From Macrostomum lignano (taxonomy: Eukaryota), in NCBI GenBank assembly GCA_002269645.1, contig NIVC01002545.1, forward strand, positions 1 through 64,000: a stretch of 64,000 bases of DNA, in the 5' to 3' direction. This document shows, piece after piece, positions 24,573 to 34,756 of this stretch. The translations under genes were made by a program, and so were the position numbers. Below the pieces are notes generated by a model that saw only the letters and a program-made list of their open reading frames with translations, was not told the origin of the DNA and searched no databases. How positions within the stretch are numbered: the stretch's first letter is position 1; every line of letters begins with the position of its first letter.

Positions 24573-27500
24573 ATGTCCCTCTATGACAGTGTAAAGCTAC
24601 AAAAACGCAGGGTGTCTATAAATTCAAAGCCAGCATTGTCAGTGCCAAAGTCAAAGGCAGCTGGTTCTTCTAGATCCAATAAAAGAAAATATCCCAAAAG
24701 GTGTGGCCACTTTGGACCTCAGCTTAGAAAGCGTCAACAGTCAGCAAACAAGTCTACTACTGATATAACTGATGTGGACAGTGATGTTGCAGGTCAAGCC
24801 AAGCCAGGTCTTGCTAATGCTAGCAGTGAAAACTTGACAACACTGCCCCAGCTACGTGTGGTACTGACTGACATTTCCAAATCTGTGAAGCAGTCAGCTG
24901 CTGCCACCAGCTCAAAATCTGCTGCCGATAGGCTAGCTGAGCTGAGACCTGACTGCAGCATTCTGCTCCCAGCTGGCAAGACAACTAGCCAATCTGTGAA
25001 TGATGATCCAAATGCTGATGGCAAAGATGATTGCGAAAATGAAGATATTGGCAGGCTGGTGTGGGCGCGTTGGCAGAGACAGGTGAGACTTTGTTGGCTA
25101 TATCTTTGGGCCGCATGAATGTCTGGATTCTAAATAATAATTATAAATAATAATCAGAATCTCTATTCATCAATAGAGATTCAGATCCCATCAGCAGAGA
25201 TTCAGATCCCATCACTAGAGACTCTGATCCTATCAATAGAGACTCTGATCCCATCAATAGAGATTCTGATCCCATCAGCAGAGACTCAGATCCCATCAGT
25301 AGAGACTCTGATCCCATCAGCAGAGATTCAGATCCCATCAGTAGAGACTCAGATCCCATCAATAGAGACTCTGATCCCATCAATAGAGATTCTGATCCCA
25401 TCAGCAGAGACTCAGATCCCATCAGCAGAGACTCAGATCCCATCAGCAGAGACTCAGATCCCACATCAAACCCGCAGTCCTACCCAGCTCTGGTGGTCTC
25501 CGGCCGCCGCTGCCACCTTCGCCCGGCCCGCCCCGGGATGCGCTGGCTCCTGTGGCTGGCTGAGGGCAAAGTGTCCGAGCTACCCGTTTCGGGTCTCCAG
25601 TCCATAGACAATCCGCAGTCCCTGGCAGCCGCTATGACGTCATCGGCGCAGAAAAACTCCCTGCTAGTTCGAGGTGTTCGCCGACTTCGCCTAGAATTAA
25701 TCGAACGTCGAGACGAGAGTTTTCAAAAGTCTGATGGTGCTACCGGCAGTAGTGGCGGCAGCGCAATCGGTCAGGATTTGGCGCAACTGGCTGCCGAGGA
25801 CGAGGCGGCGAGGAAGAGGCGTCAGCCTCTTCTGTCTGACTGGGCCACCGACTGTCTGGTTGACATTTATAAGTAAGCCTGATTAGATGGTAGATAGATA
25901 GATAGACAGACAGATAGATAGATAGATAGATAGACAGACAGATAGATAGATAGATAGATAGACAGACAGATAGATAGATAGATAGATAGATAGACAGAGA
26001 TAGATAGATAGATAGATAGATAGATAGATAGATAGATAGATAGATAGATAGATAGATAGACAGACAGACAGATAGATAGATAGATAGATAGACAGATAGA
26101 CAGATAGATAGACAGAGATAGATAGATAGATAGATGATAGATCTATCATAGATAGATAGATAGATAGATAGATAGACAGACAGATAGATAGATAGATAGA
26201 TAGATAGACAGAGATAGATAGATAGATAGATAGATAGATAGATAGATAGACAGATAGACAGATAGATAGACAGAGATAGATAGATAGATAGATGATAGAT
26301 AGATAGGTAGATAGATAGATAGATAGATACACATATAGATAGATAGATAGATAGATAGATAGATATAGATAGATAGATGATAGATAGATAGGTAGATAGA
26401 TAGATAGATAGATACACATATAGATAGATAGATAGATAGATAGATAGATAGATATAGATAGATAGATGATAGATAGATAGGTAGATAGATACACATATAG
26501 ATAGATACACATATAGATAGATAGATAGATAGATAGATAGATAGATAGATAGATAGATGATAGATAGATAGATAGATAGATAGATAGATAGATAGATAGA
26601 TAGATAGATAGATAGATAGATAGATAGATAGATAGATAGATAGATAGATAGATAGATAGATAGATAGATAGATAGATAGATGGATAGATGGTTGGATGGA
26701 TGGATGGATGGATGGATGGAATCCATCGCCAATTCACTATGATAAAATTCCAACAGCCTTACCAGCAGCCTGATTCTGACTCACCCATCCGCAGGCAGCA
26801 CCGTAAATCGCTCGGTGCCGTGGCCGAAAGTGAGGGATTGCATCTCGCTGTCAGCGGTGAGTTTTGTATTGCTGTTGTGGCTCATGCTTGGGCGCAACCT
26901 TTGGATTCACCCGGCCGTTTCTATTGGCAACACACACGTATGTCGCTATTGGACAGAATAGTAGTCACGTGACTGCTCTCAGCCAATAGCGACTTACATG
27001 TGTGTGTTGCCAATAGAAACGGCCGGGTGATTCCCAAGGTTGCGCATGTATGTTGTGGCTTTCATTTCGATGCGATCGAGTTGTTTTTTCGTCTAGATGC
27101 TACTATTCCCACATCTTCAGTTTCTCAGTGCCGAAAACGTCAGGTGGGGACTAGGGTTTCCGCGATCCTCAGGCTTGACTTGCCAAATCCTCATACTGGT
27201 ATTACCAGAACCCAAATCTCCCAAATCCCGAGATTCCCAGATCCCCAAATCATCCCTAAATCCTCGAGATTCCCAGATCTCCAAATGTTCCCCAAATCCC
27301 ACGATTCCCAGATTCTTTAATCCCCGAGAATCCACGTACAAAATGTTCCCCAAATCCTCGAGGTTTCCAGATCCCCAAATCCCCGCGATTCCCACATTCC
27401 CGAATGTTTCCCAAATCTTTGAGATTCCCAGATCCTCAAATCTTCTCTAAATCCTCGAGATTCCCAGATCCCCAAATATTCCCCAAATCTTCGAGATTCC

Positions 27501-33500: not shown

Positions 33501-34756
33501 TGTTCTGGGGCAACCTTCCCGGCATGCTGCGCTCCTCTGGCGTCGCCTCCACGCTGGCTGCCGATGTTGTGCACTGCGCCAGGCCGGCTGCCGCTGCTGG
33601 GCCTGAGCCCTGTGAAGCTGAGTGAGTTGGTTCCGGCAACTGGGTCTGGTTGGTTCTCCCAAAGCCAGTCACCCTCAGAACCAGTCACTCCCTGAACAGA
33701 AAGCGTCACTCTCTGAACCAGTCACTCCCTGAACCAGTCACTCCCTGAACCAGTCACTCCCTGAACCAGTCACTTCCTGAACCAGTCACTTCCTGAACCA
33801 GTCACTTCCTGAACCAGTCACTTCCTGAACAGAAAGCGTCACTCCCTGAACCAGTCACTCCCTGAACAGAAAGCGTCACTCCCTGAACCAGTCACTCCTT
33901 GAACCATTCACTCCCTGAACCAGTCACTCCCTGAACCAGTCACTCCCTGAACCAGTCACTCCCTGAACCAGTCACTCCCTGAACCAGTCACTCCCTGAAC
34001 CAGTCACTCCCTGAACCAGTCACTCCCTGAACCAGTCACTCCCTGAACCAGTCACTCCCTGAACCAGTCACTTCCTGAACAGAAAGCGTCACTCCCTGAA
34101 CCAGTCACTCCCTGAACCAGTCACTTCCTGAACAGAAAGCGTCACTCCCTGAACCAGTCACTCCCTGAACCAGTCACTCCCTGAACCAGTCACTCCCTGA
34201 ACCAGTCACTCCCTGAACCAGTCACTCCCTGAACCAGTCACTCCCTGAACCAGTCACTCCCTGAACCAGTCACTCCCTGAACCAGTCACTCCCTGAACCA
34301 GTCACTCCCTGAACCAGTCACTCCCTGAACCAGTCACTCCCTGAACCAGTCACTCCCTGAACCAGTCACTCCCTGAACCAGTCACTCCCTGAACCAGTCA
34401 CTCCCATCCTGAAGGCGCCAGCGCCATCTGGCCAGCTGCATCGACCCTCGCAGCGGCCGCGCCGCCCGTCACGCCACCGTCGGCTGCGTCACCACGAAGC
34501 GCTGCAGCGGCCGCGGCCCTGACGGCTCCCTGCCGGTGGCCGACGCTGACGGCCTCCCGGACGCCCTGTGGGTGACGGAGCTCGAGCGGCTGTTCGGTTT
34601 CCCGGCACACTATACACGGACTGCGGACTGACCGACCTGGCCAGGCGCAGGCTGATTGGCCGCAGCTGGTGTCTGCCTCTGGTTGCCCACCTGCTGCGCC
34701 CGCTGCGCCACTTCTTTGCTGTGCTGCCGGGGCCTGATGCCGGCGACGGCGAGTGA
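24573..34756 (+). CDS. DNMT3: DNMT3-type DNA (cytosine-5)-methyltransferase, PWWP + ADD + MTase; 2-nt frameshift in last exon
   Basis: Exons 24573-25082, 25478-25872, 26795-26856, 28068-28432, 29048-29220, 29874-30206, 32988-33158, 33436-33621, 34454-34756; all phases match; 831 aa if 2 nt at 34614-34615 are removed. PWWP-like ([25 protein letters not shown]), ADD (CLACG..EHPV..SLCVDC..DDG..YCSVC..MCG..CGRCFC..WLCHLC), motif [58 protein letters not shown]. Confidence 0.92.
25165..25462. repeat. 21-nt minisatellite (gagactcagatcccatcagca), DNMT3 intron 1
   Basis: About 14 units; source of the MGSESLL ORF. Confidence 0.93.
25884..26719. repeat. (GATA)n microsatellite grading to (GGAT)n, DNMT3 intron 2
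   Basis: Direct inspection. Confidence 0.97.
27219..28030. repeat. 36-nt minisatellite organised as 72-nt dimers (cgagattcccagatcc..aaat), DNMT3 intron 3
   Basis: Two variants alternate ([24 protein letters not shown] in the artefact ORF). Confidence 0.93.
28491..29010. repeat. 16-nt minisatellite (tcaaagcttctcatgc), DNMT3 intron 4
   Basis: About 30 degenerate units. Confidence 0.92.
29250..29818. repeat. ~25-nt purine-rich minisatellite (gcatgagaatggaggggaagagcag), DNMT3 intron 5
   Basis: About 22 units. Confidence 0.92.
30236..32900 (+). repeat. 29-nt minisatellite (cagatcctcagttgctgggccagcctccc), DNMT3 intron 6
   Basis: About 90 units with recurring variant blocks; stop-free on the plus strand, which produces the three 900-aa artefact ORFs. 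Confidence 0.97.
33159..33405. repeat. (TCTG)n microsatellite, DNMT3 intron 7
   Basis: Starts at the donor GT itself (gtctgtctgt). Confidence 0.95.
33675..34404. repeat. 16-nt minisatellite (gaaccagtcactccct), DNMT3 intron 8
   Basis: About 45 units with gaacagaaagcgtcactc variants. Confidence 0.96.

Follow-up and report, generated by a model that had tools for sequence, protein, structure and literature searches.

Positions 24573-34756 of the window (that is, of the 64,000-nucleotide stretch of DNA analysed here) hold, on the forward strand, a nine-exon gene for a DNA methyltransferase of the DNMT3 family; all eight of its introns are of the GT...AG type and have compatible phases (Table 1). 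With a probability of roughly 0.93, this locus corresponds to BOX15_Mlig031191g1 (PAA57018.1), which belongs to a set of three near-identical DNMT3 copies in the subgenomes of the neopolyploid flatworm Macrostomum lignano. The flatworm host that had been suspected earlier is confirmed by the scaffold, NIVC01002545.1 of M. lignano (assembly Mlig_3_7), to which window positions 14573-44631 are byte-identical at the same coordinates. Literal translation of the nine-exon model reproduces PAA57018.1 at every one of its 805 residues, and the locus and exons of that record (UniProt A0A267E685) likewise show no difference from those found here. GenBank calls the protein only 'hypothetical protein' and UniProt 'DNA (cytosine-5-)-methyltransferase'; neither flags its truncation (discussed below), and the annotated gene end is 34631 in the record and in the window alike. 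The window gave no matches when scanned for Rfam families and tRNAs.

Table 1. Features of the DNMT3 locus, in window coordinates.
Feature	Position	Strand	Description
Exon 1	24573..25082	+	aa 1-170: low-complexity N-terminus and first PWWP-like barrel strands; donor CAG|GTGAGA
Exon 2	25478..25872	+	aa 171-301: remainder of PWWP-like domain (SYPALVV...) and helical part; AF2 strands and helices
Exon 3	26795..26856	+	62-nt micro-exon; acceptor CCGCAG, donor GTGAGT; used in PAA57018.1
Exon 4	28068..28432	+	aa ~323-444: acidic/serine-rich linker and GATA-like zinc finger half of ADD; PF17980
Exon 5	29048..29226	+	aa ~445-503: PHD-type half of ADD; donor GTAGGT; PF21255
Exon 6	29874..30206	+	aa ~504-614: MTase start; motif I (LFDGVASA), motif IV (GGSPCS, catalytic Cys605); PF00145
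Intron 6 minisatellite	30239..32896		28-bp unit x 94.9 copies
Exon 7	32988..33158	+	aa ~615-671: motif VI (ENV, E657) and FF-interface residues (LLFFEF)
Exon 8	33436..33621	+	aa ~672-733: motif VIII (RRARLFWGN; R691, R693)
Exon 9, read literally	34415..34631	+	TRD loop, motif IX (FGFPAHYT), frameshifted RTAD, TGA 34629-34631; annotated CDS end
Extra TA	34613..34614	+	window CACTA[TA]CACGG versus CACTACACGG in both paralogues; +2 frame shift
Out-of-frame remnant	34615..34756	+	45 codons: RD-interface Arg, motif X, C-terminal helix; in frame only without TA

Exon structure, paralogues and the public record

The gene has two paralogues, BOX15_Mlig034009g1 (PAA85768.1) and BOX15_Mlig027037g1 (PAA52470.1), which share its exon structure, splice sites and flanking genes and whose coding sequences (CDS) are 98.8-99.6% identical to that of the window copy. 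Each encodes 846 aa in the same nine exons, with the same splice hexamers. They differ from the window copy in lacking the extra TA, in encoding motif X and in their intron lengths. Exon 1 aligns without gaps to both paralogous loci, at 98.8% identity to one (L001, positions 10001-10510) and at 100% to the other (L003), and the micro-exon is 100% identical in both. Intron lengths differ widely among the copies because of tandem arrays, which occur in 8 of the 8 introns: the counterpart of intron 6, for example, is 457 nt long in L001 and 543 nt in L003.

In the window, the intron 6 minisatellite produces false open reading frames of 914-978 aa in three forward frames; the earlier note was therefore right that repeat-filled introns here generate long false reading frames (>900 aa). 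Its suggestion that automated annotation could easily be misled was not borne out: PAA57018.1 uses exactly these nine exons, and the Mlig_3_7 annotation was guided by RNA-seq (PMC5730564). Indeed, the gene is already public along with its exon structure, as is the fact that M. lignano retains both DNMT1 and DNMT3. Passages in PMC11292947, PMC9246332 and PMC10658182, each citing Wasik 2015, ascribe DNMT1, DNMT3 and low 5mC to this species, in agreement with the statement made earlier that Macrostomum keeps DNA methyltransferases and low methylation. Because the gene is on record in M. lignano, the host is in effect a taxon in which DNMT3 is ordinary, and the novelty once attached to the locus falls away. 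A literature search by the gene identifiers of all three copies found no mention of them.

Domain architecture of the encoded protein

The protein is a canonical animal DNMT3, composed of a PWWP-type barrel, an ADD domain and a C5-cytosine methyltransferase (MTase) domain. Its assignment to DNMT3, proposed from the sequence beforehand, is upheld by phmmer searches of the PDB, in which human DNMT3A (E = 2.6e-98) and DNMT3B (1.4e-92) are matched, the bit score being 333 for DNMT3A versus 54 for plant DRM and 27 for M.HaeIII. Pfam matches are PF00145 (2.7e-18), PF17980 (2.9e-8) and PF21255 (8.9e-10), the latter two exceeding their curated cut-offs. A homologue search with the full-length query gave only 4 matches and was repeated without the low-complexity N-terminus; the homologues found outside Macrostomum are all DNMT3A/B/C, rather than DNMT1, DNMT2 or DRM. 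The best Foldseek matches are DNMT3A2/3B3 chains, over 690-705 columns that include the PWWP region.

The MTase motifs that had been listed previously are all present: FDG at aa 535-537, PC at 604-605, ENV at 657-659 and RxR at 691/693. Each of their residues (F535, D536, G537, P604, C605, E657, N658, V659, R691 and R693) falls in an invariant or near-invariant alignment column. Motif IX is in frame, and the residues of both the FF and the RD interfaces are encoded at the locus. The ADD domain has a complete set of zinc ligands, with C386, C389, H404, C412 and C415 in invariant Cys/His columns, and aligns to the DNMT3A ADD structures 3a1b and 4qbq at about 1e-19 to 1e-20.

Mammalian DNMT3A and DNMT3B (for example PDB 4u7t, 6pa7 and 8eih) have the same domain order (PWWP, ADD, MTase) and ~40% identity in the catalytic domain. 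Shared with them are the catalytic Cys, ENV, RxR, the FF-interface Phe, the RD-interface Asp and Arg, the ADD zinc ligands and also the Met equivalent to M548. The Macrostomum protein differs from both in having Asp in place of R882 and in the greater length of the insert that separates motif VIII from motif IX, and from DNMT3A in the TRD, where Arg836 is replaced by Lys (as in DNMT3B) and Asn838 by Cys; the window copy, moreover, ends before motif X. Over the ADD-MTase region, identity to vertebrate, insect, tick and shrimp DNMT3s is 39-43%, the same range as is found among those groups. Hence the description of the protein as highly divergent does not fit this region: judged by sequence, divergence there is ordinary, and unusual divergence is confined to the PWWP region.

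That region has no match to PF00855, either with the whole protein (at E <= 1) or with the isolated segment (at E <= 10), although the PWWP-bearing DNMT3s of other phyla among the homologues found all carry this domain. It is nonetheless a diverged PWWP-type barrel homologous to the PWWP domain of DNMT3B, as phmmer comparisons with three DNMT3B PWWP chains (1khc, 2e-8; 5ciu, 5e-7; 6r3e, 6e-16) demonstrate. An AF2 model made for one of the paralogues (P0001, which is 98.5% identical to the window model) places strands at residues 162-167, 170-177, 191-196, 202-206 and 210-212, followed by helices over 216-308, with pLDDT values of 57-84 over residues 155-225. (An AF2 model built from the sequence of the PWWP segment alone gave a pLDDT of 38.8 and was unusable.) The complete PWWP-ADD-MTase architecture announced in the earlier note thus stands for the ADD and MTase domains, which Pfam recognizes, and for the PWWP domain by homology to DNMT3B though not by PF00855; it does not stand for motif X, which is out of frame.

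Where DNMT3A and DNMT3B have SWWP, the Macrostomum motif is SYPA, with one residue deleted. The DNMT3B cage for H3K36me2/3 we take to consist of F236, W239 and W263 together with D266; at the aligned positions F is replaced by Q, the first W by Y and D by E, and the second W is kept. Since PF00855 is unmatched, the function of this PWWP domain is uncertain.

The frameshift in the last exon

Window positions 34609-34618 read CACTATACACGG with the extra TA and CACTACACGG without it. Read literally, the product is 805 aa long and ends, ahead of motif X, in ...HYTRTAD; with the frame corrected it is 846 aa long, and neither length is the 831 aa that had been predicted. Similarly, the nine exons described previously as phase-consistent are so with respect to their GT...AG introns and matching phases, but the last exon, if extended to 34756, is out of phase. 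This frameshift was overlooked in the earlier note. In the window copy, motif X (GRSWCLPLV) can be read only by shifting to the +2 frame downstream of the TA; in both paralogues it is in frame. The remnant that contains it aligns to DNMT3A 875-911 and is the same as in the paralogues except for K812R, plus A809G in L001. A short intron that might absorb the frame change was sought in the last exon, where no GT...AG pair was found, and an intron explanation was rejected on comparison with both paralogues, which show the change to be a 2-bp insertion. A search for homologues of the frameshifted last-exon product (HYTRTAD) returned none, the word index giving only 2 candidates.

The missing motif X makes activity of this copy less likely but leaves its identity as a DNMT3 gene untouched. 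Since the 805-aa product is without the C-terminal helix, motif X and some of the RD interface, it should be catalytically dead on its own.

The three loci are syntenic: DAO, a 224-aa open reading frame and an IRK gene flank all three of them. That the locus might instead be a contaminant, or a horizontally acquired methyltransferase rather than a flatworm gene, is scarcely credible: nothing in favour of it emerged, and it was rejected in view of its spliceosomal GT-AG introns, of the three syntenic paralogous loci within the same assembly and of its nearest relatives outside Macrostomum, which are animal DNMT3s. Differences between the copies amount to 0.43-1.22% of the CDS, with a dN/dS of about 0.24. 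This fits the 1.1% SNP rate reported for CDS across the three subgenomes of M. lignano (PMC10733133). Changes along the window lineage (4 synonymous and 4 non-synonymous, which are tiny counts) do not indicate a clear relaxation of constraint; replacements specific to the window copy are G524C, R731C and K812R.

The TA insertion is somewhat more likely than not to be a real and very recent lesion, representing early gene loss after genome triplication. It is the sole indel in 2541 nt of CDS in the three-way comparison; it is a dinucleotide duplication rather than a homopolymer slip; the Pilon polishing of the assembly used both Illumina and RNA-seq reads (PMC5730564); and the same copy also gained the radical replacements G524C and R731C. 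These points tell against a consensus error introduced during assembly or polishing, in which case all three copies would be intact 846-aa genes and the window locus would be fully functional. Such an artefact is nevertheless a serious possibility: the TA comes from one draft genome, which was assembled from PacBio reads with Canu before Pilon polishing (PMC5730564). This draft has been described as prone to error: 93% of the read pairs map to more than one locus, and indel-length differences between paralogues come to 5.5% in the CDS (PMC10733133). Moreover, the 45 codons beyond the TA remain open and near-identical to those of the paralogues, and dN/dS in the window lineage is not raised.

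If the TA is real, one might also imagine that the 805-aa product has been kept as a non-catalytic accessory subunit, which (like DNMT3L or DNMT3B3) would occupy the outer positions of a hetero-tetramer via the FF interface and thereby regulate the intact paralogues. The FF-interface residues (LLFFEF and ISRFL), the ADD domain and the PWWP domain are intact upstream of the stop. A premature stop in a last exon should escape exon-junction-dependent decay, and since that is where the stop falls here, the mRNA for the 805-aa product is expected to avoid NMD. The GenBank model, furthermore, derives from RNA-seq-guided transcripts (PMC5730564). Mammalian DNMT3L and DNMT3B3 are catalytically inactive accessory paralogues in which part of the C-terminal catalytic fold is missing and the FF interface is kept. 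The parallel with them is one of function and applies to no more than the truncated copy: those proteins have a long, independent history under selection, whereas in Macrostomum the truncation comes down to one 2-bp change, which may not be real. With copies only 0.4-1.2% apart in CDS, no copy-specific selection seen, no sign of copy-specific expression in the literature search by gene identifier, and simple decay after polyploidy explaining the data, a regulatory role of this kind is improbable. If it were true, a regulatory subunit would have been caught at its birth, with sequences no more than about 1% diverged since the genome triplication.

Proposed function and implications

By analogy with the rest of the family, the intact 846-aa copies would be de novo CpG methyltransferases, whose ADD domain would read unmodified H3K4, thereby relieving autoinhibition, and whose catalytic domains would act as dimers joined through the RD interface. 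Together with DNMT1, they would account for the low 5mC of M. lignano. The window copy, as assembled, is set apart from them by the TA insertion in its last exon, which ends the frame just past motif IX. With three DNMT3 loci, one of them truncated as assembled, RNAi and CRISPR designs as well as expression counts should separate the copies.

All three copies have an altered PWWP reader pocket, so targeting via H3K36 methylation should not be assumed for these proteins. The degenerate cage that the copies have in common could uncouple the flatworm DNMT3 from H3K36 methylation; if this is true, then such uncoupling might bear on the unusually low 5mC seen in M. lignano.

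The DNMT3 gene and its existing annotation

Six-frame translation of 24400-35000 reveals, on the + strand, stretches of DNMT3-like protein interrupted by tandem-repeat arrays. Exon junctions were read off the DNA and then checked against the closest database protein, giving the nine exons listed in the table; all eight introns of the window copy are of the GT...AG type with agreeing phases, and all eight contain one or more tandem arrays. The largest of these (a 28-bp unit × 95, at 30239-32896) stays open in each of the three + frames, giving rise to false ORFs of 914-978 aa. 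As a reading of the sequence, the earlier note is partly confirmed: its nine exons, catalytic motifs and repeat-filled introns are borne out, but the last exon, which it took to be phase-consistent, leaves phase in the window copy.

Features of the window (positions on the forward strand)
Feature	Position	Strand	Remark
DNMT3 exon 1	24573-25082	+	
DNMT3 exon 2	25478-25872	+	
DNMT3 exon 3	26795-26856	+	
DNMT3 exon 4	28068-28432	+	
DNMT3 exon 5	29048-29226	+	
DNMT3 exon 6	29874-30206	+	
DNMT3 exon 7	32988-33158	+	
DNMT3 exon 8	33436-33621	+	
DNMT3 exon 9	34415-34756	+	end is stop of TA-ignored frame
Sodium:solute symporter exons	4983-9182	-	PF00474; upstream of oxidoreductase
D-amino-acid-oxidase-type FAD oxidoreductase exons	11265-16013	-	PF01266
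224-aa ORF, single-exon	36742-37416	-	without Pfam match
Inward-rectifier potassium channel gene	40819-44159	-	PF01007 2.7e-53, PF17655 5.2e-46
Mariner-type transposase DDE domain, open 262-aa ORF	50206-50991	+	PF01359 6.4e-19
Rap1-like small GTPase exon	57852-58250	+	PF00071 1.1e-37

All nearest proteins in homologue searches are from Macrostomum lignano. The 90% cluster of P0001 (an 846-aa DNMT3 paralogue) holds, from Mlig_3_7 (GCA_002269645.1), PAA85768.1 (846 aa), PAA52470.1 (846 aa) and PAA57018.1 (805 aa). The gene of the last occupies 24573-34631 of NIVC01002545.1 (93,103 bp), a record byte-identical to the window over 14573-44631, the range compared directly, so that the window is presumably its first 64 kb; and literal translation of the nine exons equals PAA57018.1 exactly. 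The existing annotation of this gene thus has just these exons, contrary to the expectation that automated annotation could easily mis-predict it: the repeat-filled introns did not mislead the GenBank annotation because it was built on RNA-seq-guided transcripts (PMC5730564). Nor is the gene novel: passages in three papers (PMC11292947, PMC9246332, PMC10658182; each citing Wasik et al. 2015) state that M. lignano, in contrast to Schmidtea and the parasitic flatworms, has retained both DNMT1 and DNMT3 and has low 5mC, so that, with the GenBank and UniProt entries, its DNMT3 was already known.

Catalytic core and PWWP region

When an extra TA in exon 9 is ignored, the frame-corrected protein matches human/mouse DNMT3A at 2.6e-98 and DNMT3B at 1.4e-92 (PDB search), and PF00145, PF17980 and PF21255 above curated cut-offs. 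Aligned with 17 DNMT3s of vertebrates, insects, ticks, a shrimp and Daphnia, it retains as invariant or near-invariant columns the ADD zinc ligands, FDG (535-537), PC (604-605), ENV (657-659), R691 and R693; alignment to DNMT3A adds the FF-interface residues LLFFEF and ISRFL and the RD-interface Asp/Arg, the roles of all these residues being presumed from DNMT3A structures. Identity to DNMT3 of other phyla over ADD-MTase is 39-43%, the range that insects, ticks, shrimp and vertebrates show among themselves, so 'highly divergent' is unsupported for the catalytic core. Of the earlier interpretation, then, a flatworm host and a DNMT3 were right; high divergence, easy mis-annotation and novelty are unsupported.

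PF00855 is unmatched in the whole protein, and in the isolated PWWP segment even at E<=10; every PWWP-bearing DNMT3 from other phyla among the homologue hits carries it. The segment is homologous to solved DNMT3B PWWP structures (1khc, 2e-8; 5ciu, 5e-7; 6r3e, 6e-16). AlphaFold2, run on P0001 (98.5% identical to the window copy) with an alignment of 18 sequences, models residues 155-225 as five strands and then a helix (pLDDT 57-84), and the best Foldseek matches are DNMT3A2/3B3 chains over 690-705 aligned columns, an alignment that therefore takes in the PWWP. Aligned to the DNMT3B PWWP, the segment has SYPA where SWWP is expected, a one-residue deletion, and Q, Y, W, E versus F, W, W, D at the cage positions. 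The conclusion from these comparisons is that a PWWP-type domain is present with its predicted methyl-lysine pocket altered; the domain called by the earlier note thus stands by homology to DNMT3B chains, though not as a PF00855 match.

The TA insertion and three gene copies

Where both paralogous loci (L001 and L003) read GGCACACTACACGGACTGC, the window reads GGCACACTATACACGGACTGC, and hence carries two additional bases, TA, at 34613-34614. Literal translation of the window copy meets a TGA stop at 34629-34631 and gives an 805-aa product ending in HYTRTAD; the 45 codons beyond the TA, in frame only with the TA ignored, align to DNMT3A residues 875-911 and take in motif X and the final helix as well as the RD-interface Arg. 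The gene end proposed earlier (34756) is the stop of the corrected frame but not the literal one, and the proposed 831 aa equals neither 805 (literal) nor 846 (corrected).

The odds that this is a real lesion rather than an assembly artefact are put at roughly 60:40. Counted for a lesion are that the TA is the sole indel in 2541 nt of CDS among the three copies, that it is a dinucleotide duplication rather than a homopolymer slip, and that Pilon polishing used Illumina and RNA-seq reads (PMC5730564). An artefact, the less probable but still substantial alternative, is favored by the assembly being a PacBio draft, which its analysts term error-prone, with 93% of its read pairs mapping to several loci (PMC10733133).

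The three loci have like flanks (the oxidase upstream; the 224-aa ORF, then the potassium channel downstream), and the DNMT3 copies share nine exons of equal length and position and identical splice hexamers; intron lengths are very different.

Introns and lineage-specific coding changes of the three copies
Copy	Span	Introns 1-8 (nt)	Synonymous	Non-synonymous
Window	24573-34756	395, 922, 1211, 615, 647, 2781, 277, 793	4	4 (P335H, G524C, R731C, K812R), plus TA insertion
L001	10001-23738	4570, 484, 446, 2509, 603, 457, 105, 2023	14	9
L003	10001-20325	395, 1107, 3243, 1144, 496, 543, 345, 511	2	1

Turnover of intronic tandem arrays is much faster than the accumulation of point substitutions. Coding divergence among the copies (0.43-1.22%; window versus L001, dS 0.029, dN 0.007, dN/dS 0.24) fits the published description of DV1 as having three paralogous subgenomes with a CDS SNP rate of 1.1% and large indel differences (PMC10733133). 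The lineage counts for the three copies, being too small, do not show relaxed constraint.

The 28-bp minisatellite GCCTCCCAGATCCTCAGTTGCTGGGCCA forms three separate arrays: that at 30239-32896 (95 copies, within DNMT3 intron 6), an oppositely oriented one at 7661-8284, and one at 59041-59594. Given intron 6 lengths of 457/543 nt in the paralogues, the array either expanded in the window copy or shrank in the paralogues since triplication. The oxidoreductase gene span holds a 32-bp × 62 array (11863-13806) and (CTAA)n in 330 copies (14248-15569); the potassium channel gene, syntenic at all three loci, has several 23-35-bp arrays in its introns, and the mariner-type ORF downstream of it is either a copy of a transposon or a remnant of one. 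The 224-aa ORF is 99.4% identical in DNA to its L001 copy, without gaps, and is also called as a gene downstream of DNMT3 in the window locus and L003; its antisense translation is wrongly fused to a DNMT3 C-terminus in UniProt A0A1I8IPI0. A0A1I8F4V2 (older ML2 assembly; 383 aa, 'USP domain-containing protein') is a frame-scrambled L001-type DNMT3 copy: draft-assembly indels have already yielded broken DNMT3 models in M. lignano. CpG observed/expected is 0.51 for the whole window (GpC 1.18, TpG 1.14, CpA 1.17) and 0.88 in DNMT3 exons; such depletion would fit germline methylation, but is no independent evidence because tandem arrays dominate the window.

Proposed function

Judged from their family, the intact 846-aa copies would be de novo CpG methyltransferases, in which ADD would read unmodified H3K4, freeing the enzyme from autoinhibition, and the catalytic domain would dimerise via the RD interface, flipping the target cytosine onto Cys605; Lys occupies the Arg836 position of the TRD loop, as it does in DNMT3B. 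The truncated copy should be inactive alone, having lost part of the dimer interface along with motif X. With its stop codon in the last exon, its mRNA would probably escape NMD, which is exon-junction-dependent. A role as a DNMT3L-like accessory subunit is therefore conceivable by analogy, but nothing supports it and it seems highly improbable. Rather than a discovery, the unflagged truncation of one copy is a small addition for experimental design, as is the altered PWWP pocket.
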